DNA of 64,000 nt. Source: Tubulanus polymorphus (Eukaryota > Animalia > Nemertea). The DNA lies in NCBI RefSeq assembly GCF_964204645.1, contig NC_134035.1, positions 2,790,001-2,854,000 on the forward strand. Direction: 5' to 3'. The notes beneath the pieces are model-generated. The model was not told the DNA's origin, did not search any database, and worked only from the letters and a program-made list of their open reading frames with translations. Below are positions 1 through 22,360 of this stretch, one piece after another. A program made the position numbers and the translations under genes. How positions within the stretch are numbered: position 1 is the first letter of the stretch; each line of letters starts with the position of its first letter.

Positions 1-1129
1 TTCGACGAAACTTCGTACAGTTTACTGTATAACGGTTTCACTGTTAAACCGCCATCGCTGCTTTGTAGCTATTATTGAATTATGAGTTCGACACTTTTGT
101 CGTCGGAAGAAGTTTGGCATTTAAGTGTTTACTACAACACTTCCAGAAGTAATAGTTCATTCGGTCTAAGCTGCGGTCGTTAAAAACCATTCGACGCAGA
201 CCGTCTTTCGATGGCAGTTGAGAGATAGAGAAAACTCCGGCGGTTCGCACAAAAGTGATTAGTTAGCGCTGAGACGGGGGATCACTGTTAATTCCAAACG
301 AATGAATGAATAGTAAGAGACCGACATTCGGGACCGCGAACGACTGCGCATTCGTTCTGATATAAAACGCAGCCGAAATCGAGTGAGGAGATATAAACAA
401 GATTTTTAGACAGTCTGATATGTTAGTGGTTCTAAAACCGTTTGATGACCGTACGGGAAGAGCATGGCAGCTAATTCTCTCGAATTATGGTTGTTCTAAT
501 GAAAACAGTTCTGGCGAAAATGATAGATATGGAAAGACGTGACTAGGTAGAATGCCCACTGTCTATGATATCATGAACTGCATACAGTTAAGACTTTGGC
601 CGTTACACTATATAACTTACAGTTCTCCAAATCTGACGATACGAAACATGATGAGACAGTTGCAGATAGTTAAGCCCTGTACTAAGCGGAACCCGCACTT
701 CGTATTCCGCCCAGGCCTCGGAAGCCTATTTACGTACGACTAGAAATGCTTCGATACGATGCAAATGAACTTCAATGATGATTGATAGGTGCATTTTCCT
801 CTTCAATTACCAAAAAATGTCGGGTAAAAAATGTCGAAAAAATAGACAAATCCGCACGGGCCTAATACCGAGAGAGCATGGAAGGCAATACTGGTACCCG
901 TAGAATGTGGATAATTGTCTAAACTAGCATAGAACATCATAAATATGTACATGCGTGCAGTAAATAATGCAATTCTATGCAGGCCAAGCAAAGCCCAAAG
1001 GCTGCGTAGCGCTGGTACCCCGAGAAAAGAAAACTAACAAGCCACCAGACGACGGCCTCGAGCTCAGACTCGAACTCCAAAATTAGCATGCGTTAGTTCC
1101 CATTGCCTTATCTAGTGCCAATAGTTAAG

Positions 1130-1460
1130 TTTTGTAACTTTTTGAATTTCGACCCATTCCAGAGTTATCCGTGGTCATCTTCAAGGTCAAGGTGCTGGAA
1201 AATAGTTTTTGACGCCTAGTTTTGCCGCTAGGTGAAGCACTGCACAACACTAGACCCCTATACTAACATTGTACCCAAGTTCCATCAAGATCGACCCAGT
1301 ATTATTGAAGCTAAGTAGCTGAAAGCCATACACACAGACCGACGGACACACACGGATAGACACGAACGATACAAAATGGTGATACGGATATGTACTTAGA
1401 GATAAAGAAGACTTGAGTCTACTATAGCCTACTAGAGTGCTAGCTAGCCTACTTGTTTTC
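1130..1460. mobile_element. Probable non-autonomous Helentron/DINE-1-like element
   Basis: caaggtcaagg and caagttccatcaagatc motifs, a degenerate GACA/GACG microsatellite and a terminal acttgtt. This layout is typical of lophotrochozoan HINE elements. Confidence 0.45.
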
Positions 1461-4400
1461 AAGGTAGTCCAATTAACTGACTACACGGCCACTAAACCCT
1501 AAAGCCCCGCCGTTCAGGTTCAGTTCGATGTATTTTGTATTCATTAAAGATACGACAAGTCGGAATTGATTTCTAAACGACGATGACAAATCTTTCATCG
1601 CAGTCCCTGATTTCATGCACTTTATTCGATAGGCTACGAGTTTACAGACGACCGATAAATCATAGCTTCGAATGTTCATCAGGGGAAATGGCGTAAACGA
1701 AAGCCGTAATTTAATAAACGGAACGATACCACCTTGAGGAAAAGACAACGGCGAATTCATAACGCCTCGAATTTGTCATTTCTATGAAAGTCATCGTGAA
1801 ATAGTTTTTTAGTTCGTCGGAAAAGCTTGCATTTCGTACAACGGTCGAATGGCCCGTTGTATGATAACATCATCGAGACCATGGAAAGTATGGCGTTATA
1901 ACGAATTTGACGAATTTGAAGAATGGTTTGTTCATTTTGGTGTGTTTGTTCTCAGAAGCTCCTCGATGTTAAGCGAATATACGCGCTGGCATTATAAAAA
2001 AGCCACAAATACAAAAAACGAATCCGCAAAAGTTTCGAAAAGCGTCAGTGGCAGAGGGGCATATGATCCAATCGTTAAAGTCTCAACAAAATGTTCATAG
2101 TCAACCTTTCGAGTCCACTGAAATGACGAGACTTGTCTCCCATTCTCTATATAAACATACACTTTTTGACCTTTAGATTATTAAGAATATATACTTAAAG
2201 TCGGTTGAAGTTTTTTAACACCGTCGTCTATAGATAAACACCGAGTACTTAAGACGTCTTAAAGCTTCGTCTTTGCAGACGCAGCAGACGAATCGACCGC
2301 GCCTTTGAGAAAATGAATCGAGAGAGGATATACATTTATGGGTGTTGTCGCCGCCACTTAGGCTGAATTTCGATCGAAATCCGAGGCTTAATATCCATAT
2401 ATTCGAGACAAAATAGTAAATCCTCGCTAAATATAACGTCTTGCACGAGACAAGTGCCGCGATCACACGGAGACGTAAGCATGTAAGCTGGGTGAAACTT
2501 ATCCGAACCAGACCAACGGAGTCAAATTTGGCATATGCTCAATTAGAGAGCGCGTTGACCACGTAAACCACTTACTCGTTAGTAGAATTACTGTGGCCAG
2601 TGAGGGTCTGGTCCAACGTTGATGGGCGGGCAAAATGTCGCAAACAGGCACGGACCCATTTGGCATCAGAGTAAAACGGTTGGTGCGGGTCAAAACACTC
2701 GCGCTACAAGCGTTATACCCGGGTCGTCGCTTGTCATAATTTTTCATCTGATTTAGAAAATACCATTCTCACAAAAGAAATCGGAGTCCGAAAATGTTTC
2801 CTATGATAACATCGTTACCTCGCGGGATAAAGAGTGTTCACCAAGTTATACGTGTACACGCTGTATATTTCGGCTATATTTCTGTAAGCGCCTTTTGATT
2901 GCGGTACTCCCCGTGAAAAAAATGAAACAGATTTAGACGTAAATCCTTTTGGACGCGTGAATCCCTCGTCTTACGTTACGCACGCGTTAAGAGGTGTTAA
3001 GTAAACGTACGTGTATTGTGTGACCATAAAGATAAATAACCGTACAAATTGAGACTGACAAATTATTCCACGTTGATGGCCACAGCGGAACAATACCGAC
3101 GTAAATTGGTTTATTTTTCATCGTTGCGCTGGTAAAGTGGCCTTTCTTAATGAGGTGGCCTATTGTTAGGCGAGGAGGCGCGATGGGACCGGGAATAAAC
3201 GAGGTGTCGGGCTACAGGACCATTCGTTAGTGCGGGGAAGGTGATAACATTCCGTCGCGGAAGGCTTCTGTAATACGTGTTATAGTTGATAACTTGATAT
3301 TCAAAATTGTATCCGACGCGCATATTGGGAAAAAAGCGAGATAAATTGCCCTTGACCGCCAGCGTAGTTTTTCGGATGATTGATTTTAGCTCCGGTGAAG
3401 TATTCGCTGTTATTGAAACGCAACTCATGGACTGAAGGTGTCGCTAAAACTTTGCAGGACTTTTCCGATTTGAGAATCAAACCGCCTGTTTCGCTTCCGG
3501 CAGGTGTAGCGGGTTTGTAAGGGACTCCAAATCAAAAGGAAAATCAGAAGAAATCTACCAATCGAATAATTAACAGGGTCATCCCTATTTTAAGATTTAA
3601 AAAAAGCTTTTCAAGACTAAAAACTATACAAAACTTTTCAAGACTCAATTAAGATTGCGAATTAATTCCAAAAAATATTCAAATCATAAGACTGATCTTT
3701 TTCAGTTGTTTTTGTTAGCTATAGATGCAAGTTGGGTCTGGACATCTCTGTAATCGAATTATAGAAGTGTTTACAGCACGGATGTCACCAAGCCCACGCT
3801 ATATCCTTTTATACTATTATACACACTTTGAAAGCTTCCGAGATGTGGACGTAACTTCGATGGTATCTGTACGGCCCTGAGAAGAAGACGATGATGACGT
3901 CACGCGGTTAAGATAAATTATGTCCTATGGGAATCGGACGCCGAGTCCGGAGTTCACGGATTGGTAAATGACATCGGTCTATACGAGAGCTACGACGATG
4001 ATGCAGATAGCACGGAGTGATATATCACTGCCGCGATGTCTTAATATTCGACAGTCAAGAATGAATACCGCTTTCATCTTTCCTCAATGTACGTTATTAC
4101 AGCTTTCTCGCTAATGAATATCGGTTAGGACGTGTTAGTACCGAATTATGAGATAATTAATTGCGAAAAAGAAAGTATTTATCAAAAGTCCTTATAACGC
4201 CACTGCTGGGACCGATGGAAGATATGGAGTTAAAGGGGGGTTTGGCGTTATATAGAATAGTATCTTCGTTGAATTTTAGTTGGATTGAGCAAATATGTTC
4301 TCCGAAAAATGTTGGCATTCCGAGAGAAGTATCGAAAAGGATTGCAGCGTTATAACGGACGGTAAAGCGAACCCTATGAATTTATGTGAATTTATTCTGA

Positions 4401-5344
4401 GGTTTCGAGGTTTTGAATAAACTTCATCTTCAGAGAAACCACGTGAATGAATAATATGTCATTGAAAAAATTATCAATTTCGAAAACTGAGGTCGCATCA
4501 GTCTAGCATTCGAGTGTATTACTAGATACTCATCTTGATATTCTGAACGAATTTTTCTTATTATGAGTATTATGATTATCATGATTATGATGTATCAGTA
4601 CCATCGAGCGTTAAAAACAAAAGCTATTTAAGGCTATACACTTGATCTTTAACCCGGACTAGCGATGTCTGAAAGTCCGAGAATTCGGAAAATACGTTTG
4701 GAAATCGGATAACTTCATTTCTCTTTTTTCCGAGTCATATCTGATATCGGCGAGGATATCTGTAAATACATTAGATCATCATTTACGCCGACATTACGTA
4801 CAATACATATGTACGTAATTTCACATTTCGACCGAACCCGCTCGGTCTGGAAAGTGGAAAAAAATGTCAGAAATACAAGCCGTAAGTTGACTTTAGCGTG
4901 ACTGAGCATATCGACTAACGGCGGTCGGAGAACGAAAACAATCCCGGCTAAGATCGCCGGGTTGCATGCTTAGCTTAGACTTCAATAATTAGTCGAATTG
5001 CTAGAGAACGTCGGCTTCAACCGAAGAAGAAAACGAATCGAAACAGCACGCTGAATATTCGACGTTCATACCGTTTTTAATTTGACAACGATCCCCTCGA
5101 GGTAGACAACTCGACGGAAGCCTATTCAAGTATTCCAGTTCAAAACGGCTGAGTTTCGAAATTAAAAGAAACGTCGACGCGATCAGAGCCACCGCCAGAA
5201 AACGCTGCTACACACAGAGAAAGATGGAAAGTGACCAGGGGCTAATTTTCTTCACCGCGGTATAATCCGCGATCAATTCTCTTTGAGGTTTCGGCTGATC
5301 TGCTGCTGCGCGCGTCTGAAGTGAATTATGTCTATTAATCGTTG

Positions 5345-5527
5345 TGAGAATTGCCCCAACATTATCGTTATCGACAACGCGCTACTGCCGTTAATACTTA
5401 AAGATCAGCTATTTTTTTCCGACGGCGCATTTTTGTCGTTCTCCTCACAATATTGAGCCAGAAACTCTTTCTCTCTTTCTCTTTCTGCCGGGTCATGATT
5501 AAGGTGATCTATCTTTGTGCATTAAAT
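5345..5527. repeat. Diverged ~185-bp direct repeat, copy 1 (copy 2 at 11335-11528)
   Basis: Collinear shared blocks tgagaattgccccaacatt, tatcgacaa, ttttccgayggcgcatttttg, atattgarccagaa, tctctcttt, catgatt, gtgcaytaaat. Confidence 0.85.
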
Positions 5528-7688
5528 GCGTAATTGCTTTGATATGGAGGAGACCCGAGTGTACGTATATACAAGCGAACGATGCCTTAGAACATCGGAA
5601 CGAATAGAAAGATGTCGATTTTTCCATCTGGCCTCAAAGTAAGAAATCTTGTATATAGGAATCTACAGAAATCATACGATCTGCTGCTTGAGATCTAACG
5701 GATCATTCAGAAAAAGGGAATTGTAATTTGAAATCTGAGATTGTCCGGATGGGATCGATCTAGAAAGGCCCTCAGGTCACCACCGACGCGGCACTGATGG
5801 CCATTTGCTGACCGCGCCCAGGAACTAAAAGCAACCACCAGCAACGTATTCAAACGTTCAAGTCCAATCCGTTTTTCGACAGTGCCGCGGCCCCGGGGCA
5901 TGTTCCGATTGGAGAGAGGCCTATTCTTGACAAACACTACCACCTGGCGGGTTGACTGGCTGAAGAAAAAATAACCAATTGCTGAGTCGGCTTCTAGTCG
6001 AATTCTCGAATGGTCGATGCTATTTTAGATATGTCAATTAAAAAACTACTTCAAAAATATAGAATTGAATCTTGTTGTATTTGACAAATGATTCGAAAGC
6101 AAAACAACCAGTGTCGCAGGTAATTTTGTTCTACCATAATGTGCCCAGTTCAACAGTTCCTCTTTACTTTACTTTACTTGTTAAAGTTGGACTTAATCAA
6201 ATTGAAAATAGATTAATTCAGTCAAATCAATTATAATCAAATTATTAGAGTCAAATCACGCCGAGACTACGGAACCGGACCCAGGCCAGGACATCTACTG
6301 ACGTCGCGGTGTCCGGACATTTTTTTCGACCGCGGTGTATTGTCTTTCTCGACGCGTTTAGCAATACGTTTAATATGTATGCGCTGTGTGGCTATCGTCT
6401 GCCGAGTGAACAATCCGAAGCTCTTTTGGGAGAGAAATGATGATGAATTCTCGATGCGATGTCAACGCCGGCGCCGAATTTGCATATTTGCGTCGACTAA
6501 ACCGGGCAACCCTTCCTGGTTAAATATACTCGCGACTTTAGTCTGAGAGAGAACGCAGGAAACGCTTTCTCGAGCATCAGTCGGTTGTTCAGTCAACTAT
6601 TTCCATAATTTGTGGTCAAATAGAGGAGAACTTCTTTGAGGAGTTCATTCGCTTTTCAGACGACATTACTGTCTTATTAAGACGTAAACAAAAACAGAGC
6701 AAATATCTTTAACGTCTTCAAAGATTTATCCATTCGAGTTTACATTGGAAATAAACGAAATTCTCGTTGTCACGATTCACGATGTTATCTTTTAAATTTC
6801 GTTCGAAATTACGGATATTTTGGAACCTGTTTTGTCGATTTAGTCGAACTTAAAAATTAGAATGAAATTTAGTTTTTCGCTTCACGATGTTTTTTCACTT
6901 TCCAAATTTCATATCACAATTTACGGATATTTTCACAAAGTATTTTGTCGGTTTCCTGAAATTAGTTCAACGATTCATGAGTCGAGTTTATCATAGTTTA
7001 GCCTGAAGTTTACAACATTCCGATGTGCGTATATATCAAATTCAGAATCGACGAATCGATATCGATACCTTGGCCTTGAATGAATAAATACATATTCCGG
7101 ATTAACATTTGCGATAATTCTGAAGACTTTGAAAATTGATACCGCAGAATGCGATATTGATTCAGCTAAAATATTCGCATTAACAAGAAGTAATAGTTAA
7201 CCGGATTGGATTTCTATTCAGAATTAGGAAAATCAGATAACGGAACGATTCAAAAATTGATATTTAGCAATGGACTATTGTCTATATATATCTTTGTATA
7301 AAATTGAACTTGCGTTGCCTGTTAGTCAATACGATTATGATATAGATTTGTACAGAAAAAGGAATTTTCATCCAGAAAAAAAAACGGTTTCAGGGAGCAT
7401 TGGATAGATTTCATCGATCGATAGGAGATATAAACATCTTTGTAGAACTGAATCTTTTAACATATCGGGTAAGAGTCGATTTATATTCATTCTGTATTGG
7501 ATTGCCTCCCTGCTGGTGGTCTGAATTCGAGCTCAATTAAAATCTAATAGATTTCAATTAAAAGTTCTTCCAGTAATTTGCAAGTCAACAAAGATCAGAA
7601 AGGTGGTTATGTCGTTAGCCAGAGTTGACTAAGTGACTTAAGAATTTGATTTCAGCTTATTGCCGCAGTTTAATCCAGTCTGTAAGTC

Positions 7689-8648
7689 ATGACCGCACTG
7701 ACAACAAACTCGACCTTACAACTGAAGATCGGTCTACCTTACTCATCGACGATATTACTACAGTCGATATCAAGACTAACCGACGAACGCCTGCGGCTTT
7801 TCGTCGTGATATTTCAACCGATCGTGTTTCTGTTCGGATGCGTGGGCAACCTGGCCAGCCTGTGCGTAATGACCAGCGCTAAATTCAGACACCTGTCCTA
7901 CGCGAACTACGTCGCCGCGTTGGCCGTGTCCGATTTCGTGTCGGCGATTTTCTTCGCCGCGCCGGTGCTGTACCACTTCAGTCCGTTCCCGCAAATGACG
8001 CTGACCGCGTGCAGATTCTACGAGTACCTCTACAAACACGCGACCACTGTCAGCGTCTATACGATTATGGCGATTACCGTCGAGCGATTTCTACTGGTTC
8101 TTTACCCGTTGAAGGCGCGGTTATTTTGCACGGGTAGATTCGCTCGGCTGGTTATCGCCGGCCTGGTCGTGCTGACGTCGGTCGCCTCCGTGTACTTCTC
8201 GACGACGTTGCGCTACGACACGGCCGGTAAACTCGGTTGTTACTACACGCGCCGCGATCAGCGATTGTCCTTCACGGTCATGGTCGTCTACAAGTATACG
8301 GTGCCGTTTTCGACGGTCGCCACGCTCAACGCGGTTACCGTCGTCAACTTGTGCAAGCAGCGCGATTTCGGGGCCGGTGATAGTAAATCGGCCCGCGCTC
8401 GGCGCACCACGCTGATGCTGGTCAGCGTCAGCGCAACGTTCTTGGTGACCACGTTACCGTCGACGATCCGCGCCGTCACTGCCATCAACCCGATAAAATT
8501 CGGCAGTCCGTTTGGCGATGAGATTTGGGCAGCGGCGACGGCTTTACTTCTCAGTTGCAACTTTTCGCTGAATTTCTACATTTACCTACTGACGGGCACG
8601 GAAATCAGAAACTTTGTCTGGGTTAGAATCAAATGCGCACATACTTAA
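7689..8648 (+). CDS. Intronless class A (rhodopsin-like) GPCR, FMRFamide-receptor/sex-peptide-receptor-like orphan group, 319 aa
   Basis: Seven hydrophobic segments: TM1 GCVGN, TM2 LAVSD, TM3 Cys (TACRF) and ERF (DRY variant), ICL2 YPLKARLFCT, ECL2 Cys (LGCYY), TM5 VPF, TM6 FLVTTLP, TM7 NFSLNFYIY (NPxxY variant). N-terminal NST sequon. In-frame TAA at 7683-7685 just before the ATG. Splice acceptor (ttgatttcag) ending 7655 suggests a 5'UTR intron. AATAAA near 9136. Confidence 0.93.
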   Translation: MTALTTNSTLQLKIGLPYSSTILLQSISRLTDERLRLFVVIFQPIVFLFGCVGNLASLCVMTSAKFRHLSYANYVAALAVSDFVSAIFFAAPVLYHFSPFPQMTLTACRFYEYLYKHATTVSVYTIMAITVERFLLVLYPLKARLFCTGRFARLVIAGLVVLTSVASVYFSTTLRYDTAGKLGCYYTRRDQRLSFTVMVVYKYTVPFSTVATLNAVTVVNLCKQRDFGAGDSKSARARRTTLMLVSVSATFLVTTLPSTIRAVTAINPIKFGSPFGDEIWAAATALLLSCNFSLNFYIYLLTGTEIRNFVWVRIKCAHT

Positions 8649-11334
8649 GCGTTTCGTATAGTAGCCACTATAGCATATATTCATATACATGTTTATTGGT
8701 ACTGTTCAAACTTAATCAAACAGTGCGCTGGATTTTCTAACAATCCAATTTTCCAAATCGTCATGAAGAGAAGAAAAAGAAAAAACAAAAGAGCTTAGCT
8801 AACAAATCTACAGCATCTTAAAACGACAATTTTGTTTAATTAATACCGGACGTGTGTGTGTGTATCATCACTGTTTAAACAACACTAAACTGGATTCTCT
8901 GATAATTTTCACAAATTCACATTCATTTCTATGAAAAGAGAAAAACGAAAGGAACTAAGCCATATCTTGAACCGACGATTTGTTCGATAAGTATGAATGG
9001 ACATTTAATCTTTTTGTGAATTAAAAGGCCCGAACGTCCCCGTTCTAACATCAGAATGTAGGTTTGCATTACTTTTGCATCCAGTATTTCAACACCATCA
9101 CTGTATAAATAAGAGGTGGAAATATGCATAGTTTGAATAAATTGGTTTAAACGCGTCTCTTTACGTAACACACACAATATATAGTTGCTGCTTTGAGACT
9201 TCTTCGTCGCTGCGTCGTCAAAAAGACATTTTCTTTTAGATCTTTGTAACTATGCTATAGATGTGCTATCTAAACATACGAGATTCAATTATTTCATTAT
9301 AAAGCGACTCTGTAAGTCTAAGGCTCGGTTACCATATTCGTAATTCATATGCAATGTATATGTCACTATATACAATATAATAAAGAAATAGAAATGTAAT
9401 GACATAAAGGTTTATTCAAACATTTGGGAAGATATACGTATCTCGTAGTTCAGCAAACAAAGACGCAGATGAAGGCGCGTTAAATGGGATGAAAAGCTTT
9501 TGCGACGCGAATACACGTAATGGATGCCTACATTCGTGATTAATTTGATTCGGTTTGGACCAATTTTCCGTTCGTTTTATGACTTTGAAATAACGAGAAA
9601 GCGGCAACGTTTTATAATCTAAACGAAAACGAAGATTTTTGCGCATGAATTTTCGCGTCATTTCATATTACGACAGAGTTAACAACATAGAGACAACGGC
9701 AAAACTGCGAGTCGATTGCAATAAATACATTTACAATGAAGATTCATTCCTTCCTTGTTTCCGCACTTATTCAAAGTCTGGAAATGCGAACCTAATCGTA
9801 AGGTCGATATCTTGTCTTTATGGACGAACAGTGTTCCGGTATATTCGGGTAACGTTTCGATAATCAGACTCGCAGGAATTCGGACTTATTTCGGTTCGTT
9901 GTATATAGGCCTAATACATATATACCAGTGGGTCAAGGGAACCGATGCTGCTCGCTCGGCCGAAGAAGAAGCAATGGACTTAACGAAAGGCTCGGAGATC
10001 GTGACAATTAGTATTGTATATTCTTACAGCCAATATGAAACCGGAAAGAAATTATAAATCACGAGACTAAGGAACCGCAGACGATGGAACGAGAATCAGA
10101 TATCACTGTTTACGTCAGAGGAGTTCTGAAATCAGTATATACACAGAGGCAGATTTAGGGGACGGTCTCGGGGGTCCGGACCCTTGCCTTCCCATTGAGG
10201 GTGCCCTTTCCGCCAAGAAAAAGATCGTTAAACCTGCAAATTTGACACGCATCCTCTTTAGGATATTGCATATTATTTTCCAATACATTCTTTTAGAAAA
10301 TAACCAATACCGAGTGGGACCCCACTAGTAGCCTATATATGACATGGCTGCTTTAACTGAAAAATGTCTCTTCTTTTTTCCTCGACTGAATAATCAGTAC
10401 AACTCATAAACTAGAGCGATAAAAAGGAAAACAATAACGGGGGCTATTGAATATAAAACCAATCACTAAAATTGTAACCAATATCGCTAGTGTAATAGAA
10501 GGAACTCGGCTTTCGAAACTGAATTTGTGAAATTTTCAAGATCAAAGAAAGCGCCTACGTATCTTCCCAACAAAATTATGGCGATAGTATATAACGGCCT
10601 TGACCTAAGCCAATGAGAATATCATCAAATCATAAATCAGCTAGATAATAATTTTTTGCGTATCAAAATGTTCACCCCTGGCTGAGGCTGTACCACAGAG
10701 ATCTCCGTCGCTCTACGATCCTATAGTGCGGTATATCAGACACTAAGGTTCTTGGGGAAAAATGCCACTTTCTGAGTTGAACGTGCTAATTTTTCTGCCT
10801 TTCTCTTTTTTTCATTACGCGCATTTAAGGTGTATTTTATTTAGGCTCGGCGTAAATTTCTACTTGTCGATATCGATATATTCAATGAATCAATCGCTAA
10901 TATACGGTGTAATTGAACAGTGCGTTCAAATTTACCAATAACCGATCAAAGAACGAAACGCGCTTTGGTTGAAACATTTATGGTTGATTATTTCAAAGGT
11001 TAAAACTATCGATGATTATAGGAAACCCGAACACTGCGCGGTGTTGGTGGTGTTCTTCGATCACAGATCAATCGATCGTTGAAAGGAGAACGACCGAAAA
11101 CAAAAACGTTTGAAAATGATCCCACACAAAGAATCTATTCCGATAACGCGTCATGGATGATTACGTTTCTGCTGAAAACTCGTCTAAAACTTTAAAACCC
11201 TTGCGTGGAATGAAAACAGTTTCAATAAAATTGCGACCTTTGTTTACGAAGATTTTTTTAAGTATCCAATAACTGTAACTATTGCGCAGTGCCCTTGTGT
11301 CCTTAATCTATGTGTTACACATTTTGTTTTGTCT

Positions 11335-11528
11335 GAGAATTGCCCCAACATTGGGCTGATCTCTATCGACAAACTCTGCTCCCTTTATACTTCACGATCT
11401 ACAACTTTTTCCGATGGCGCATTTTTGCCTCATTAGCTAAGATATTGAACCAGAACCCCCTCTCTCTTTTCCTCTTATGCACAAGGCCATGATTGGCGCA
11501 ATGGATTATCCGTCTTCGTGCACTAAAT
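11335..11528. repeat. Diverged ~185-bp direct repeat, copy 2
   Basis: Same blocks in the same order as 5345-5527. Confidence 0.85.
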
Positions 11529-13964
11529 CAGTAAATTGTTTGGATATATTTTACAGTTTACTTACGTATATCTAGGTATGATGACGGGTCTTCTACTACA
11601 GGGTCCGCCTGGCTTGCCGATCTACAGCGTTCAGACCATCGCCGGATCGTTATATATACTTCCTTCTCTTCTTTGCCCCAGGGTCTCGAGTTCTTGGCCA
11701 GAAGATGTCTTGTTGCTTTCATCCACGACAGTTCAGTGTTGCGCATAGTACTAACACAATGACGGTATGCAACGCCCTGAACTCGATTTCATGGTCATCG
11801 GTCGTAACGGAGATACACGTACTATGCAGTCGGTTCCATCATGCTGGACACTGTTTTAGATTCCATGGTTCCATCGATGATTGCTTTCGGGGCTAATTTC
11901 ACGCAGAGGTGACTGGCATAAATACCTATAGTAATATCAAAAACTTCGAATTAATTCAAAAAATGACAAATCTCCCTGCACGCAAACTATATACGTATTT
12001 GGAGTTTCTTCTTCAAGGAATAAAGTCTCAAGCCTATATCGCATCGTCCGTACCCTAATGCACGGACGTCACGTGATATTGCCTGGCAAGGCCGTCTTTT
12101 AAATTCAATTTGCTCGCATTTGACTTCACTGGCGTAACCTCTATACCAGGACAGTTCTGCAATTCACGTAGAATAATACGACAAATCTACGGAACACATC
12201 GTCGACGACTCGTATTCGTATATTGTATTAATACAGCTTCAATATTGCGTTCATTTTTCGCTCGCCGGATAAGTGAGTACTCTTTACTCGCGGTGGTAAT
12301 CTGTTTAACCGCGGCTGTCGACCTTCGTTTACCACTAAACGAACGACCAAGTACCATCCACTCACACGCCGCCGATAATCCGATTATAGTAAAATGTTAC
12401 GTAGGTTTTTTTTTCAGCGAGATTTACTATATCGCGATTCCCATACGAGTACTCTAAACGAGGAAACTGACGAATACATCCGCCCTATACACAATTTTCA
12501 TTCCCAAAAGCAATAAACCATTTTTACGGTGACCAGCCGCCATTTTCAGGGTGCTTTTTACCTAGTTTGCCTCGATTGTTCTCTTTCTATGAAAACTATT
12601 TTCGATGCGTATCTTGTATTACATAGAAACCGATGTCGTGATGGAATTTTACATATATATGATCACGCTCAAGGAATCCAGTCGAATCGTCAATTTCTTT
12701 CTTTAGATTGACCGCGTTATCGTCGGTATTTTTCGATAATGGATAGTTATAATGATATGATAACTCATTATCTTATAAAGCGCATTGCTAATTGAATTTA
12801 ATCAAGGCGCTTTACCAAGTCTAAAAAAACATAAGAATCATTAAGATACGATGACACATTGAGAAATTAAGTCGATACAAAATGATAATCACACTTCAAA
12901 TGTTCTTTAAAAGGGTAAGTTTTAAGATAACGCTTAGCAGCATCAATTGAAGGCTTTTCTCGAGAGTTTTAGGAAGGTGAGTTGCTGACATCTTAAAGGC
13001 TCGATGCTTCCATAATTTCGTATTGGTGCAATTCTTTTAGAAAACGTCAAATACGTTCGCATAGTTTTTCCTTCGCCTACGAAAAAGGAACACGTGTTAT
13101 AAGCTATGATCGAATAGCTTCTAGAATAATCGAACGGAGTGATCGAACGTCTTCGAGATTAAATGGGCGGTAACCGGAATGAAAATCAAAACAATTCATG
13201 CAAGATGAAATCAATTTTGATTTCATTTTCTAAAAAAGCAATGATGGCGGCTAATAAGCGCACAGCGAGCGCCGAAGGCGCGAGCTGGAAGCTCCCTAAG
13301 TTAATCGCGCGTGTGAGGCAAATTCAAATTTTCTATATTTCTCCATACCGTCCTTCTCAAAAAGTGTAGTTTACATCCGGGACACATGGGCATTGGCTAA
13401 ATCGTGGCAACGAAAATGACGGTCACGGATGGACTTTCGTCGAAACTTGCGGGCCGCGTCGCGCGGGTAGTTTAAATACGTGAATGAAGGATAACAAAAT
13501 TATTAGGTGTAATTTTCAGAATATTTACAAAGAATATTCACAAAATAATGTCAAAAAATGTTATTTTTAGTTCGTATTTCTCCGTAGAAACCGATTGCAA
13601 GACTGGATTCGAATCCCACAAAAACAGTCCCTTAGCAACGGGTCGAATGTTTACAGAATAACAAGCGCGCCGGTTTCACAGCATCACTAAGGGTCGAGTC
13701 CCGGAGAATAACGCGCGCACGCGGTCCGCGTGTTACAAAATGAACGCCCCGCTCCACACAAGTACTGAATAATTGACTCAAAATTTTGCCAATCCCTGGG
13801 AGTAAAATGCGGCACGTTTTTAACATATCGTATCTTTATGTGTTTTTTACTCCCGTTTTTCAAACGTTATTCCCCTTTTCCGTTTCGAGTAAAATTCGCT
13901 ATAATCCGTATTTAATATACCGTTGTTCCATTAATTCCGTACCCATGCAACCCGTTGTAATACT

Positions 13965-14506
13965 TAGGAACAAATCTTTAGTGTAAAACATATAAAACTA
14001 TTGAAGCCATGAGATTTAATGTAGAAATCTGACGTTTTTTAACTACAGAAAAATTTATTCTCGTGTAATCGATAAAACAATAGGCTCTCAATATGTGATC
14101 AACATTCCCAAACTTCCACGTTATTTTTCGCAGAAAATGATTTTCTTTTCTTTTTTGATCACGGGTCCCTTAATTCGCTCGAGTCATATGTTGGGTGATT
14201 TTTTTTTTGGTCACGCCACCGGGTGCCTTCCTTCAGCAAAACCTACATTCTTTACAATGTAGAACTTGGAAACAAATTTCTTGTGTAAAACATAACTGTG
14301 AAAGCCATTCGTAGAAGATATCTGACGATACAGAAAGATTTATTCTCGTATGAAAGATAAAACAAACAAGGCTTTCAATTGTAATCAATACTCTCAAAGC
14401 ATGTTTTTTTCGCAAAAAGGAATTCCTTTTCTATACATGTATTTGATCACGGCGAATCTTCGCTCGAATAGATCTTCGACATTTTGGGTGATTTTCTTTG
14501 GCCACG
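13965..14506. repeat. Diverged tandem duplication, ~295-bp unit x2
   Basis: Collinear blocks aagccat, atctgacg, tacagaaa.atttattctcgt, gataaaacaa, ttgatcacgg, ttcgctcga, ttgggtgattttt in 13965-14215 and 14270-14506. Confidence 0.8.
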
Positions 14507-15258
14507 GACCATACCGAACACGTGCCCCCGCAAAACCTATGTTTTTTTTACAACGCAGCATTCTATATAAGTTGCCGAAAGGGCACTCGCCTCTATTTAA
14601 ATCAATAAAACTCTGGCTGTGCGCTTCACCAAGTTTCGACTTTGACATATTATTTCGGAATTTATATCATTATATTCATGCTGCATTTCGCCTGGAAATA
14701 TGGAAACCCGACACCGCACCTTCGGCATCGCCATCGACAATCTGTATGAATTGTTAATTAAGCGGATAAAAGCGTTCGACTTCGACGACAGACGCCCGAA
14801 ACAAAAATCAAAAATATAAAGACGGCGAACCGACGAAATCTGATAAGACAATCGGCGAGTTCATCAGTAAAATCGACCGTCGTATCCGACTTTTGACGAC
14901 ACTGGTAACGATAGAACGCATTCCGTCTTCGATAGATCGGAACTGCGGGCGCTTTTTTTCCTAATGCGTTCCGTTTTATCGCTAATTTCGACGCATTGAT
15001 TTCGCGCATAATAACACGACTGATTTACGGAGAAAAAGCTTCGTCGTCGTATATCGCCATCAGCGTTGGAACTACGGTTGTTTAAAACGTGCGTCCTCTC
15101 TATAATAAGGGGCTCGTGTTTGTAAATAAGCCCGCGGCTGCTTTCGACAATTTCAAGATATGTTTTTGTGTGTATATAATGATTTAGAAGACGTTGTAAG
15201 AACTTAAAGCATATAAATATATGCATTCACCCTAGGTATAATAAGAAGTTAAGAACTT

Positions 15259-15398
15259 GGGGCCGGTTGCATAGTCATGACTTAGATTTAAGACCAGCTT
15301 AAGACCAACTTAGTTCTATAGCCAATCTAACAACTTAAGACCAGTTTTAACATTTAAGACCACTTTTGGACTTAAGTCACGACTGTGCAACTGGCCCC
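15259..15398. mobile_element. MITE family A (TIR GGGGCCRGTTGCAYAGTC; PIF/Harbinger-like)
   Basis: ggggccggttgcatagtcatgactta ... taagtcacgactgtgcaactggcccc. Relatives at 15676-15981, ~27135-27201, ~37141-37366, ~53835-54020. Confidence 0.8.
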
Positions 15399-15675
15399 TG
15401 AAGTATAGGCTTTATACATTCCCCGAGATATCAGAATTTCAGTAAAAAAATCCAATTCTTATCATTCCGATCATTTCTATTTTATTTTCTATACGAAAAG
15501 CTTTTCGAGAGTATCGTTTTAAGAGGACAACGTAATCAAAAATTTTTAAAACCTCCATCCTATTTCATTTTAAACCTCTGACTGTCGGAAGTTTTCTTAC
15601 GCCTTTTTGTTGTTCGCATTTAATTGCCGCTTTGTGCCGAAAATAGACTGCGAAACAATACAACGATCTGATTCG

Positions 15676-15981
15676 GGGACCGGTTGCACAGACACGGCTT
15701 TCATTTAGATCAGTCTTAGGCTATATCTAAGTTCTATGGCCAATCTAACAACTAACTAAGCTCATTTTGGGTTCTATAGCCAATCTAACAACCTAAGACC
15801 AGTCTAAGCTCATTGTGGTTCTACAGCCAATCTAACATCTGAAGACCAGGCTAAGCTCATTTTAGTTCTATAGCCAATCTAACAACCTAAGACCAGTCTA
15901 ATCACATTTTGGGTTCTGTAACCAATCTATCAACTGAAGACCAGTCTCAAGATTCAAGACCACACATTTACAACTGGTCCC
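15676..15981. mobile_element. MITE family A copy with an internal ~47-bp tandem array (5 units)
   Basis: TIR ggggaccggttgcacag / caactggtccc. Internal gttctatagccaatctaacaacctaagaccagtctaagctcatttt repeats. Confidence 0.8.
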
Positions 15982-17796
15982 AGCAGATCTTTATACCGTT
16001 AAGAATGCTGCGAGATTTCTTTCACCAAAATCGTTAAATTTGGTTTCGTTAACTTTCATTCGTATATCAACATGTCATATTTTGCTTAACACACCCTCGT
16101 TAAAGGATCGAATCACGTGGTGTATAGAGGCTGATTTAAACGTTGAAGTTAAGGGTTTGAAAAGCCATCGAACGAAAGCACCGACGAAACCTGATCCGCG
16201 CGAGACCTTACGACGAAAATTCTATGATGTAATGGTACTTTATATTTACGAGATTCGACTCATGTTTCCCACTCGATTTTGATCTTTAACGCCCGTTTAG
16301 ACTTCGCAGCGGAATTGACGTTGTATGCCAGTCGTCGACAGAGTAGTATCGATAAGAGAGGTTTAATAGATCCGTACCGGAACACAATGCGTAATGCACT
16401 GTATATTAAGTATTCGAGCGATATTTTTCAAATAACACATCATTCGCTTTTCAGCTTAAACGATACATCATAGTGGAGTAATGCGCTCACAAATTGGTTT
16501 AAGCGTTGACCATCGAATTACCGCGATGACGAATTGAGAAAAAAACTGCATCGTTACGATGGCTGGCTAAGTCTAACAAACCCCCGAACAACATTCTGTA
16601 TTCGACATTTCGATCCCCAAGCCACACTTCTTAAATTAAATTGATAAGTTATGTCGGGGGTCTACGCCTTTCTTTGGCTTCTTCGCTGACTGAGAAGCCG
16701 AATCCGGAGACTAAGAGTGGAGCTAATCGACACTGAGCTCACGTTATACGCGGCATATTCAAAACAAGCATTCGTTTTGAGTGGATAAGTGAAAACACAC
16801 ATTAAGCCCATGTCAGTGTCATCTCAACGACATCGCTGCCTACCGTAACGTCTGCAGTGAACTTATTTAAATCAGATAGAACGAACAGGTGCGCGTGTTG
16901 ACGGTTATGCAAATTAGGTAGCGGGGTCGTGTTTTTTTCATATCTCGTTCAGTCACATTGGCCGGGACAAGTCAATGTGAAACCAACAGATATAGTCGAA
17001 ATCAGAATGCATACGTGCTCATAGTGCGTTCATACCTCTATATCGCGCATAAGTTTTCTTTACAAAAAGTTCTATATTTCTATGCACTTTATCTTACTTT
17101 TTGATCTACTTAATTTTGATTGAACATATATTGGTTTTACTCATTAACTCTAAAATGCTGAGATTGATATTGGTCTAAATCAGTCACATGAATAGATCGT
17201 TGAATATTGACATATGTGTGAGTACAGAGTTTTCGGAGATCATGTGAAAAGCCTCATAATTCTACCAAAAATACACAAATTACTTATAATTTCTAGTTTG
17301 CATTTATGATTCGTTAAAAAAGTTGCTATTTACGATGATGATATGTTTTGATCAACAAGATCCGTCGTAAGTAGATACGCGATAATGAACAGGCCCGAGC
17401 TTTACGACGTGCTAACTGACAATTATCGGGGTCATAACAGTTTCATATTGAACTCAGCGGGGTATTAATTAGCCCCAGGCGCGATAAATAACTTGAGATA
17501 AATAACTTAAAGATTCTCATTGCGTTCTTCAAATATGAAATCAATTTTACCAAGGACAGATCTTTCTTCATACATAACAAATAGTTCATAGAAGTTATTA
17601 CGTATACCTTATCGTTTTGAGAGCCTGTGGATGTATATAAGCATTTTTGGTAACGGTTTTGAATAGTAAGGCGTCTATCGACGACCCGGCTACGATGTCA
17701 TAATAATAATAATATACACCACTCTTAATCAACACGGTTATTCAACAGCAGATACGCGCTCATTAACACATTTTCGGGCAGGGCGTGGAGCTGCGG

Positions 17797-17870
17797 TATA
17801 AATAACCCCTCAGCTTGATTCGAATTTATCATTCGCCGCACAGTGTTCTACGACCACGAAGGTTAGTCAG
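17797..17870 (+). promoter_or_regulatory. Putative core promoter and non-coding first exon of the DH31 gene
   Basis: TATAAATA 17797-17804, Inr-like TCATTC 17829-17834, then two strong donors (AAG|GTTAGT 17862, CAG|GTATGT 17871). Further candidate 5'UTR exon 18823-18902, and an acceptor at 19111-19112 upstream of the ATG. Confidence 0.6.
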
Positions 17871-18217
17871 GTATGTCGGGGGTATTTTTGTGAAAAGTAA
17901 ATTTACACAACGTCGCTTGTTGTTTGGGCGAAGGATAATTTTATAAGAACACGATGAAATATATAGATGGCTTTCACGCCATTTTTTAAGGTTGGTCGTT
18001 ACATTTTTATTTTTGATAATCCGAATACTCTTAACTAATCAAAACATTCTTGATCTAAATATCTTTCTAAATGATCTTTTACTCAAATCACTGTTATCAT
18101 TATCAATTACATCATTATCAATTATATAGTATTATTATCATTATCATTTTGCTACATTATCAGAGCTGCCTGCTGTTCCTGATTTTCAGTATTAGCGATT
18201 GATTTGTGTGATGCGTG

Positions 18218-18665
18218 CAGAAATATGAAAGATGTTACTGAGGGTCTTACTGTTGATTACTGATTAATTTGTACAGAAATATGAAAGATGTTACTGAGGG
18301 TCTTACTGTTGATTACTGATTAATTTGAACAGAAATATGAAAGATGTTACTGAGGGTCTTACTGTTGATTACTGGTTAATTTGTACAGAAATATGAAAGA
18401 TGTTACTGAGGGTCTTACTGTTGATTACTGGTTAATTTGTACAGAAATATGAAAGATGTTACTGAGGGTCTTACTGTTGATTACTGGTTAATTTGAACAG
18501 AAATATGAAAGATGTTACCGAGTGTCTTACTGTTGATTACTGATCAATTAGAACAGAAATATGAAAGATGTTACGGAGGGTCTTACTGTTGATTACTGAT
18601 AATTTGAACAGAAGTATGAAAGATGTTACTGAGGGCTTTACCATTGATTACTGATTAATATGAAC
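18218..18665. repeat. 56-bp minisatellite, 8 copies, in the DH31 5'UTR intron
   Basis: Unit cagaaatatgaaagatgttactgagggtcttactgttgattactgattaatttgta, starting at 18218, 18274, 18330, 18386, 18442, 18498, 18554, 18609. Confidence 0.97.
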
Positions 18666-19179
18666 ATTTTCTTTCATATTTCAATGAAACGTTATTGAAA
18701 AAATTCAATTTATTGCTGATAGTACTTTACAAAGGTTGGCGGCCCTGCGTTTGTATTATACCTAGTTATAGTAGTTAAGATGAGGATACTCAATTTTCTA
18801 TCGCTTAGATGTTCGTTTTCAGAGAGTTCTAGAAAGTTCGTTTTTATCTGACAAATTAAGCTACAGTGTTGAGACGCAGTACTCACTGGGAGGCTTTACT
18901 CGGTAAAGCTTTCCATATCGGCAAATTTTAATAAATCGCTTCAGAAAAAAATCTCTACTACCCTCATTCGTAACTCAGGATAATATTTACAATTTCAACG
19001 CTATCGAGTACGGTGGAGTTGTATATTTACTTGAGTATTCATTCCACAAATGATAACTAACAGATTTTTATACGTGATTAACATGTACACGAGTATGCTT
19101 GTTTATTTTCAGACCTAAATTCGCAGCAAATTCAATTACATACGCGAGACAAACCGACTCAAAAAACCAAACAACAATC

Positions 19180-20706
19180 ATGAAACAGTTAATAAGCGTA
19201 TGTTTTCTCGCCCTGGTTATACCGACGTTAGTTTTCACAGCCCCTGCAGATTCAGCTCAGAAAAAAAGGTTAGTGAGAATTCGTTGTACATGTCGCCAGA
19301 TAGTAGCTCTTCGAAATTATCTGTTTGAGAAAAAGATGTATGTTACATAAATCGACAGAGCGTCTCGTAATCTATGAATGAATTTTTTATGGGTCGAGAT
19401 ATGTCATGCATACTCATCTTATCATCGTGTCATAATATTGACGGTGGGACGGGGAAATGAGTTGGTCACGTTAACTACTCTTAAATCCACGGCACTCGCG
19501 GTCGGCAAACACGGCATACATGACCAGGAATATGCATGGAATATCCTAGGAGTCCTCACATTTCTAATTTCTGATAAAAAACCACCCCCGAGAAATAGCA
19601 TTTTAAGAATCTTAGTGACGTTATTGTGTTTCAGCGATTTCTACCCGTCTCGTTGGTGGGTATTTTCTGCTAGAAAAGTTATGCTTTCTTCGCTAGTTTC
19701 AAAGAAATGTTAACTGATTTCTAAGCTAATTTGCTTTAAAGATAGCGTATAGTATAGAATTGATGGCAGTGAAATCTGGTTTGAACCGGTCAAACATTCG
19801 TAATTCGGGCTTTTACTTCATCAGATCCTACAAATTAATATGTGAGCTAATTCATACTGATGAATACCATAGGTTAGCTAGTCTCAACCATTAATTTATC
19901 ACTAAATCTGCTTTAAAACTAACCTTCAAGAAGTCACTTGATTATTCATTTTTTAAGTGTTTTTCTAAGAAATGCGCATTTTTTTGTTTTTCTTAAAATG
20001 TACTTATGAAAACTGCATAAATCCTTGTATTTTTCTGCTGTGAGCAATCGTATTTTCTTAACGCAATTAACATCTCGATTCTAATTCTAATGCGAATATT
20101 TCCTAATTTCTGAAATGATTGCAGATCGGCTGTACGACTCTCTAATCCAGCATTGACCGCCGCTGTGTTACGGGAACTGATGGAGTATATAGTTGACACG
20201 CACGGATTAGACAAGTAAGATATACGCTGAAGAACACCATCAGATTTCGGCGAGGCTTCGATCTAACAATGCGGTTTTCTACTCTTTTTTTCCAGGGCAA
20301 AACGTGATTTCGACGGTGGGTACGGTTCAAGATTCGCGTCCGCCTCAAATTACGGAAATAAACTTATGGGTGAGTGGCGCAAACATACACCTCTTGATCC
20401 GGAATACTTCAGAGGTTATCTGCTAATTCGCTGGCCTAAATTTCCGAAATCGAGAATGATTCGGTTCGTCGTGTCTAGGTCGATATGAAAGACTGAAATT
20501 TCCGTACAAGTTTTGTTTAAAATCTAGCGAAAATCTAGAAAAGATCTAAATCTATTTCAAGTAGAATTTATAATTAGAGAAAAGCAACGATGATTACGAA
20601 CGAAATAACCGGAATGATCGTTTTATTCTTATTTTCAATTTTAGCCCTTCAAGCGGCAACCGACTGGCAAGGTCCGGGACGAAAAAGACGAGGCGCTCAG
20701 TCATAG
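19180..20706 (+). CDS. Dh31: DH31-type (calcitonin-family) neuropeptide precursor, 104 aa, 4 coding exons
   Basis: Exons 19180-19268, 20125-20214, 20296-20369, 20645-20706. All introns GT-AG with matching phases (2,2,1); total 315 nt. Protein: MKQLISVCFLALVIPTLVFTAPADSAQKKR-SAVRLSNPALTAAVLRELMEYIVDTHGLDKAKR-DFDGGYGSRFASASNYGNKLMALQAATDWQGP-GRKRR-GAQS*. It has a signal peptide, dibasic sites and a 32-aa Cys-free peptide ending GP + GRKRR amidation signal, typical of DH31. Confidence 0.92.
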
Positions 20707-21333
20707 GAACCCACCCAGTCCATCCCCGCGGACCTAGCAGACGAACTAACCGGAGTTGGTCTATACCATCATTTCACCGCTCGCACCATCTATTACTGAT
20801 ATTTCAAACAAACAAAAATCGATTCGTTTAATTTACCTAAAAAGGTTTGTTTTACGATGTTAGCACTATTTGATTATATGAATATATTCGACCTTGCATT
20901 CAAAGCCCATATGCAAGCAAAATATACGAAATATGTTGGATAGTAGAAAAAAAGGATCAACTATGTTATTATGCAAGACTAGAACACTAAATATGATAAC
21001 AATATGTCAGCGAGATGTAACACTGACGAACTGGATTTCCTATAACAAAATAAACTTACGTATCAATTTCTTTCTTCGATTGCTTCGAAAACTCTGGAAA
21101 TGCGAATCAATTCGTTTATACACATATATAGGGGCCTACTTTATAAGCGCACAAACGGAAAATTAACCTTTTTGGCATTTCGTACAGATCTAAATTAATG
21201 GTGAATTTCCCCTATGTAATTGTGTCGTGAAAATGTGTGGCCAAAAAAGAACGTTGTTAAAAAAGATCTTATATAATTAAAACTGTGTACGCTCTGATTC
21301 AAATCGGGTTTTATCTGAGATGTCTTGACGAAT

Positions 21334-21339
21334 AATAAA
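21334..21339 (+). terminator. Candidate polyadenylation signal of the DH31 gene
   Basis: AATAAA about 630 nt after the stop, followed by GT-rich sequence (tgtttggttgttgc). Confidence 0.5.
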
Positions 21340-21738
21340 ATACATATCTAAAAATGTTTGGTTGTTGCAAATTCTAAGCGTTGTAAAAATTATTTCGGAT
21401 TCTAGATGTGAAAATTGATTTCAACTTACATCAATACGTTATGGATCCTTTATCAATGCACTCCTACCGCCGAACAACCAAGGTCTGACCCGGTATCGGG
21501 TGACGCTTTGGTTTCATATTCATGATACGGTCAATGGAGATCTGTGTCAATGTGAAATGAATAGGGGAGTTCTTAGAGTCCGTGATGGAACCGATGAATG
21601 CCAAAGAACACGTAGAGCTGTATCCCTCTATTCAGAAAATTGAATTGTGAATCATCAGGTCACTCGACTTCACAGCAGTACAGTTTCTGAATAAATCAGT
21701 CCGATTACTGACTAACCCACCATCCAGTTACTGAACCA

Positions 21739-22360
21739 AACCACAGGGTGGATGCCGACTTAACCACAGAGTGGATGCTATCTAAACCACAGGGTGGATG
21801 CCGGCTAAACCAGAGGGTGGATGCCGACTTAACCACAGGGTGGATGCTATCTAAACCACAGGGTGGATGCGGGCTAAACCAGAGGGTGGATGCCGACTTA
21901 ACCAGAGGGTGGATGCTATCTAAACCACAGGGTGGATGCCGGCTAAACCACAGGGTGGATGCTATCTAAACCAGAGGGTGGATGCCGGCTAATTCACAGG
22001 GTGGATGCTATCTAAACCAGAGGGTGGATGCCGGCTAAACCAGAGGGTGGATACTGGCTAAACCAGAGGGTGGATGCCGACTTAACCAGAGGGTGGATGC
22101 TATCTAAACCACAGGGTGGATGCCGGCTAAACCACAGGGTGGATGCTATCTAAACCAGAGGGTGGATGCCGGCTAATTCACAGGGTGGATGCTATCTAAA
22201 CCAGAGGGTGGATGCCGGCTAAACCAGAGGGTGGATACTGGCTAAACCAGAGGGTGGATGCCGACTTAACCACAGTGTGGATGATGACTAAACTGCAGTG
22301 TGGATGCTGTCTTAACCACAGGGCTGATGCTGTCTGAATTGCAGTGTGGATGCTGACTCA
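21739..22360. repeat. 23-bp minisatellite (about 27 units) with a 184-bp higher-order repeat
   Basis: Unit aaccaSagggtggatgc(cgactt/tatcta/cggcta). Rare variants aattcac (21991, 22175) and atactggc (22051, 22235) recur 184 bp apart. Confidence 0.97.

Follow-up and report, generated by a model that had tools for sequence, protein, structure and literature searches.

We conclude that a locus in the genome of the palaeonemertean Tubulanus polymorphus is a single neuropeptide gene of the diuretic hormone 31 (DH31) family, also called 'diuretic hormone class 2', and we put the probability of this reading at about 95%. The DH31 gene of T. polymorphus consists of five exons spread over about 46 kb, four of which are short and coding, and its coding part lies in the 64,000-nucleotide stretch of genomic DNA analyzed here (referred to as the window, the positions of which are used throughout unless a genome coordinate beginning with G000 is given). 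A genome search with the exon 4 peptide and with the complete product matched only the exons of the gene itself, indicating that the locus is single-copy.

The coding segments 19180-19268, 20125-20214, 20296-20369, and 20645-20706, when joined by script, have lengths of 89, 90, 74, and 62 nt and yield 315 nt in frame, i.e. 104 codons followed by a TAG stop codon. The three introns between them (856, 81, and 275 nt) all have GT..AG borders and a pyrimidine-rich tract ahead of the acceptor, and the GC content of the exons (42-60%) compares with 35-42% in the introns. The same four coding exons were reproduced by a separate exact spliced mapping of a database protein, P0001, which is described below. 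The initial annotation, which was made from the letters of the window, had proposed that four short exons join in phase into a 104-amino acid prepropeptide that could not be recovered from the track of open reading frames (ORFs). The scripted join, the mapping of P0001, and a transcript contig all reproduce this structure, and the six-frame ORF list indeed holds only fragments of the product: segment 19180-19268 falls in an 83-amino acid ORF, segment 20645-20706 falls in a 38-amino acid ORF, and segment 20296-20369 is absent from the list in its own frame. The features of the gene are collected in Table 1.

Table 1. Features of the T. polymorphus DH31 gene, in positions of the window unless a G000 coordinate is given
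Feature	Position	Strand	Basis or remark
Intron 1, 3' part	1..19112	+	Whole intron 43,442 nt; starts outside the window at G000:C11:2765671
Exon 2: 5'UTR (19113-19179), ATG at 19180, signal peptide, first basic site	19113..19268	+	X2 contig piece 19106-19266; ends at a phase-2 intron
Predicted signal peptide, ~20 residues	19180..19239	+	Hydropathy; cleavage site predicted
Exon 3: conserved spacer propeptide, P0001:31-59	20125..20214	+	X2 joint 19266/20123; 856 nt skipped, GT..AG, cut +2
Exon 4: KAKR site and mature residues 1-21 (mature coding from 20306)	20296..20369	+	X2 joint 20214/20296; 81 nt skipped, GT..AG
Exon 5: mature residues 22-32 (to 20676), 3'UTR to at least 21332	20645..21332	+	X2 records 9 and 10 over 20644-21332; X2 joint 20368/20644; 275 nt skipped, GT..AG, cut +1
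Glycine amide donor (exon 5)	20677..20679	+	
RKRR (exon 5)	20680..20691	+	
Stop codon (exon 5)	20704..20706	+	
Putative AATAAA polyadenylation signal	21334..21339	+	Sequence read; transcript contigs end at 21332

Evidence that this structure is transcribed came from two sequencing runs of one 2024 study, X1 and X2, neither of which is recorded as RNA and which we compared over positions 18700-21700, a region picked between two tandem arrays. In run X1, exons and introns were covered alike at a depth of about 21-25, and this run thus behaves as DNA. In run X2, only the exons were covered, and a 906-nt contig (record 9, depth about 281) aligned with the window in four blocks, 19106-19266, 20123-20214, 20296-20368, and 20644-21086. 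The stretches skipped by this contig measure 856, 81, and 275 nt, each with GT..AG borders, and, given an ambiguity of 1-2 nt in where the cut is placed, they equal the predicted introns, so that all three junctions at which the initial annotation had called for spliced reads are crossed. Because the X2 contigs are without introns, we infer that run X2 is RNA, and because no exon-exon joints were present in run X1 over 18700-21700, the spliced arrangement does not stem from genomic DNA. With a second X2 contig, the 3'UTR reaches 21332, and the poly(A) site is predicted to lie just past 21339. The X2 haplotype differs from the assembly at three coding positions (20176, 20194, and 20658), all of which are synonymous third-position differences. 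We also note that, in run X1, two alternative contigs were found at each of 18984-19125 and 19923-20033, one identical to the assembly and the other carrying SNPs and small indels, which indicates that introns 1 and 2 of the DH31 gene were heterozygous in the sampled animal.

The 906-nt X2 contig further contains 137 letters upstream of 19106. The last 30 nt of this upstream stretch are absent from the window and have one match in the genome, at G000:C11:2765634-2765663 on the + strand. The donor at the end of this upstream exon reads TTTTAAG/GTAGGC, and the acceptor in the window reads ttattttcag/ACC at 19112/19113; the X2 alignment overran the start of exon 2 by 7 nt because the end of exon 1, TTTTAAG, resembles the genomic TTTTCAG. 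From this donor and acceptor it follows that exon 1, which is non-coding and at least 144 nt long, lies outside the window 43.4 kb upstream, and that intron 1 measures 43,442 nt. A TATA box, TATTTATA, is located 25-32 nt upstream of the 5' end of the X2 contig, and transcription is predicted to start near G000:C11:2765527. Within the 5'UTR of 211 nt there is no upstream ATG, and an A stands at position -3 of the start codon.

A search with residues 1-40 of the stop-free frame window:20267-20485:+ found one protein, P0001, which agrees letter for letter with the 104-amino acid model and is RefSeq XP_074660369.1, 'uncharacterized protein LOC141912852 [Tubulanus polymorphus]'. The RefSeq automated annotation therefore already has the coding sequence, which it found and left without a functional name. 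The earlier suggestion of a probably uncharacterized gene, of a kind that automated annotation often misses, thus needs correction: the identical 104-amino acid product was already in RefSeq, although unnamed.

The record of P0001 carries Pfam PF27927, named 'DH2-like', which stands for diuretic hormone class 2 and thus for DH31. An exhaustive phmmer search of 1.84 billion representatives returned 15 relatives at E <= 0.001, among them a protein of the nemertean Lineus longissimus (1.6e-19), 'DH31 [Urechis unicinctus]' (9.3e-6), 'diuretic hormone class 2' of the spiders Caerostris (7.8e-6) and Uloborus (2.3e-4) and of the shrimp Penaeus japonicus (9.4e-4), and proteins of Ridgeia piscesae and Owenia fusiformis. 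In our alignment (A1), Lys-62, Arg-63, Gly-68, Arg-72, Leu-83, Ala-89, Pro-95, and the amide donor Gly-96 are invariant, and Arg-97 and Arg-100 are nearly so; the consensus reads D.GYGSR..AAS..GSKLMAL..A.DWNGP-GRKRR. The pattern that the initial annotation had given as the annelid-type form of DH31 does match the annelid and nemertean consensus of this alignment, although the animal is a nemertean and not an annelid. A language-model feature search likewise placed P0001 nearest to three clusters that are all DH31 or diuretic hormone class 2 (0.93-0.94, with 169-178 shared features). The architecture of the precursor, with a signal peptide, a spacer, KR, one peptide of about 31 residues, Gly, RKRR, and a short tail, also matches that of DH31. 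Several other searches were uninformative: Pfam returned nothing for three exon pieces of 24-29 amino acids and no match at E <= 1 for P0001 (the library searched was without PF27927), a word-indexed full-length search with P0001 found only P0001 itself, and a structure search with an Atlas model (pLDDT 0.5) gave only meaningless matches to bacterial membrane proteins. On these sequence comparisons, we regard membership of the DH31 family as firm, and the original proposal of a lophotrochozoan gene of the DH31/calcitonin family is borne out by the transcript junctions together with the significant similarity to DH31 precursors.

We next consider how the precursor is predicted to be processed. 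The translation contains a hydrophobic N terminus, the basic sites QKKR and KAKR, and a Cys-free 32-mer (P0001:64-95) followed by G-RKRR, in agreement with the initial reading (KKR and KR sites, and a 32-mer followed by GRKRR). Kyte-Doolittle means over 7 residues range from 2 to 3.3 across residues 4-19, and this hydrophobic segment aligns with those of all relatives in A1. The sole cysteine of the precursor lies within the signal peptide, and the mature 32-mer contains none; in this it differs from the Cys-type calcitonins, which annelids, nemerteans, and brachiopods possess alongside DH31 (PMC3890597; PMC8557429). The mature 32-mer is followed by the amidation signal P-G-RKRR, and the genome encodes PHM-type copper monooxygenase and proprotein-convertase P domains. 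Judging from these motifs, the signal peptide would be removed by cleavage near residue 20, prohormone convertases would cleave at QKKR, KAKR, and RKRR, the basic residues would be trimmed by a carboxypeptidase, and a peptidylglycine alpha-amidating monooxygenase would turn the exposed Gly-96 into a C-terminal Pro-amide at Pro-95. The expected product is a Cys-free amidated 32-mer with a monoisotopic mass of 3393.547 Da and calculated ions at 1132.190 for [M+3H]3+ and 849.394 for [M+4H]4+. By analogy with the DH31 peptides of Platynereis and of arthropods, it may act on a class B G protein-coupled receptor (GPCR) of the calcitonin/DH31 type and raise cAMP.

The best database relative of P0001 is the Lineus longissimus protein XP_064634716.1 (P0002, 'uncharacterized protein LOC135492282'; 49% identity), which also has PF27927 'DH2-like' on record and the gene of which has three coding introns at identical positions and in identical phases. 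It differs from P0001 in having 112 amino acids, in sharing only 19 of the 32 mature residues, and in ending in SDSSSP, and its gene has longer introns (4372, 276, and 650 nt). Annelid DH31 precursors (Platynereis dumerilii, PMC3890597; Urechis unicinctus, QUP52009.1; Owenia; and Ridgeia) have in common with P0001 the series GYGSR ... SKLMAL ... DW.GP-amide followed by GRKRR, but they belong to another phylum, are identical to P0001 at 13-20 of the 32 mature residues, and mostly end in ADWNGP. The arthropod peptides named DH31 or diuretic hormone class 2 are placed in the same family both by HMMER (7.8e-6 to 9.4e-4) and by the feature search; they are likewise single Cys-free peptides of about 31 residues with a GP-amide and RKRR end, and differ in that only 12-13 of the 32 mature residues are identical to those of P0001. 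To our knowledge, a diuretic role of DH31 has been established in arthropods only, and 'diuretic' is used here as a family name that says nothing on nemertean physiology. Three Logan/ENA proteins of 247-321 amino acids (P0009, P0010, and P0011) each contain three tandem DH31-like peptides (GYGSR ... GPG followed by basic residues) and are multi-copy relatives of the single-copy DH31 of nemerteans, annelids, and arthropods.

The P0001, Lineus, Owenia, and Uloborus proteins were mapped exactly onto their own genomic loci so that the introns of the four genes could be compared. A phase-2 intron just ahead of the first basic site and another phase-2 intron 2-4 residues ahead of the KR that precedes the hormone are common to all four genes. 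The phase-1 intron within the mature peptide occurs in the two nemerteans and Owenia (KLM/A, KLM/A, and ALI/G, respectively) and is missing from the spider gene, which has only the first two coding introns in common with the others. Thus, T. polymorphus, Lineus, and Owenia have coding introns of phases 2, 2, and 1 at homologous positions, all three positions in Owenia being those of T. polymorphus. The shared positions and phases lend independent support to orthology.

DH31 of nemerteans has already been published (PMC8557429), and DH31 precursors are printed for Platynereis, three nemerteans, brachiopods, and a chiton in the supplements of PMC3890597 and PMC8557429. By eye, the mature region P0001:64-95 is identical to the published sequence 'TubulanusPolymorphus.42223' at 26 of 32 positions, to that of Cephalothrix at 24 of 32, to that of Cerebratulus at 20 of 32, and to that of Platynereis at about 17 of 31; the T. 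polymorphus DH31 described here is an ordinary member of a family known from ribbon worms. The sequence published under the same species name (Thiel et al. 2021, PMC8557429, supplementary files 2 and 26) has the same architecture as P0001 (105 compared with 104 amino acids), about 65% overall identity by eye, and 25 consecutive residues identical to P0001:65-89, also by eye; the IPTL core of the signal peptide, KKRS, the spacer motif LSNP.LT.AVLR.L, and GRKRR are common to the two. However, its last six mature residues are NSYDSP, giving a Ser-Pro-amide, whereas those of P0001 are TDWQGP, giving a Gly-Pro-amide. A search of this genome with a 33-place degenerate pattern found no match to an NSYDSP-type C terminus. 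It may be that the published transcriptome stems from another lineage that bears this species name, or that the assembly lacks the corresponding gene. The difference between a Gly-Pro-amide and a Ser-Pro-amide points to cryptic species or to rapid change of the amidated C-terminal end within one genus.

Some of the same observations allow other readings of the gene. The spacer encoded by exon 3 (P0001:31-59, 29 residues) could be a second bioactive peptide, in which case the gene would be a true DH31 precursor that codes for two hormones. In line with this, the spacer is bounded by the basic sites QKKR and KAKR, is encoded by its own exon with conserved phase-2 borders on both sides, and contains a motif, P..T..VL..L, that nemerteans and annelids share with spiders and shrimp, with Leu-45 nearly invariant. 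However, conserved acidic or amphipathic spacers of prohormones commonly serve in sorting or processing, and we found no report of spacer activity in the literature and know of no receptor candidate. We therefore consider a second hormone unlikely; were it real, a peptide so far unrecognized would be co-released with DH31 across protostomes.

It is very improbable that the 32-mer belongs to another family of amidated peptides, the Cys-type calcitonins or the pigment-dispersing factors (PDF), instead of DH31. DH31 and the calcitonin/CGRP peptides of vertebrates and lophotrochozoans (Pfam PF00214) are paralogous, share an amidated Pro end and class B calcitonin-type receptors (PMC3890597; PMC8557429), and a pigment-dispersing-hormone cluster appeared at rank 4 of the feature search (0.92, 149 shared features). 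Calcitonins, in contrast, carry an N-terminal disulfide ring, and the two-Cys ring of the calcitonin/CGRP/IAPP family is absent from and impossible in a mature peptide without cysteine. P0001 has no Pfam match to calcitonin or to PDF (PF06324), PDF is not among the phmmer relatives, every named HMMER relative is DH31 or diuretic hormone class 2, and the top three feature matches are DH31. Even less credible, to the point of being negligible, is that the locus is a relic, still transcribed yet without function, or an artifact of assembly or annotation: the ORF is intact with canonical splice sites throughout, the X2 contig has a depth of about 281 against about 22-25 in the DNA-like run X1, the allelic coding differences are synonymous only, with all family-invariant residues kept, and the gene is single-copy with a conserved structure. 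A single DH31 gene encoding one mature hormone thus remains our preferred reading.

A candidate receptor for this DH31 peptide was sought among the GPCR sequences of the genome. We obtained 103 exon hits to 7tm_2, mostly intronless ORFs of 750-950 amino acids of adhesion-like appearance. Among the multi-exon class B genes, one exon, covering transmembrane segments 3-4 at C10:12142278-12142439 on the - strand, is closest among solved proteins to the calcitonin receptor (2.5e-10), with CLR and CRF1R ranking lower, and its 51 amino acids are identical to those of Platynereis DH31 receptor 1 at about 36 of 51 positions as counted by eye. On that strand, 10 kb upstream of this exon, there is an HRM exon (C10:12152386-12152496, -). 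The region G000:C10:12142278-12152496 (-) is, on sequence, a candidate gene for a class B receptor of the calcitonin/DH31 type. Other sequences were considered as DH31 receptors and dropped: L004, together with the numerous intronless 7tm_2 ORFs in the range of 750-950 amino acids, for their adhesion-type look, the class B exon L033 for its likeness to CRF/DH44 receptors, and a rhodopsin-type GPCR nested in the DH31 gene because it has no tie to the Platynereis DH31 receptor 2 group. The latter is an intronless 319-amino acid ORF (7689-8648, +) inside DH31 intron 1 and on the same strand, with a Pfam 7tm_1 match at 5.3e-18; in it, ERF replaces DRY and NFYIY replaces NPxxY, and it is weakly similar to the solved peptide receptors NMU-R1 and NPFF-R1 (about 1e-8). 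As for the intronless frames of 750-950 amino acids, dozens contain a full 7tm_2 domain and many are tightly clustered (C4 at about 21.3-23.5 Mb, C6, C9 at about 3.6-5.2 Mb, and C1 at about 28.19-28.20 Mb), which suggests that adhesion-like class B GPCRs have expanded in this lineage.

Several further features of the window surround the gene. Three tandem arrays were seen, at 15756-15947 (47/94 nt, 4 copies), at 18218-18666 (56 nt, 8 copies, 94% matches), which lies in intron 1 just upstream of exon 2, and at 21738-22353 (23/46 nt, 27 copies), which begins about 400 nt beyond the polyadenylation signal. Three exon-sized ORFs with SAM domains (SAM_1, 5.3e-13; SAM_2, 7.5e-10) occupy 26180-27542 on the - strand, possibly from about 25619.

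Overall, what this analysis adds is modest: the gene receives a functional name, its 5' exon and 43-kb first intron are placed, its intron pattern is seen to be conserved, a receptor is put forward as a candidate, and a mismatch with the published 'T. polymorphus' DH31 comes to light. LOC141912852 gains a name and a full gene model, in which a TATA promoter is followed by five exons, the first intron being 43 kb long, and by a polyadenylation signal, and no concept is altered by the T. polymorphus DH31 gene. T. polymorphus has been reported to possess DH31 and calcitonin together with both types of receptor, and nanomolar amounts of P. dumerilii DH31 activate a DH31 receptor of the secretin type (PMC8557429, and cited therein, respectively). 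T. polymorphus is one of the species proposed for tests of ligand-receptor pairing, which a genome-anchored ligand and a receptor candidate make easier. Further, the DH31 gene structure is common to nemerteans and annelids and is in part found in arthropods, and this lends support to the published view of a protostome ancestor that already possessed DH31.
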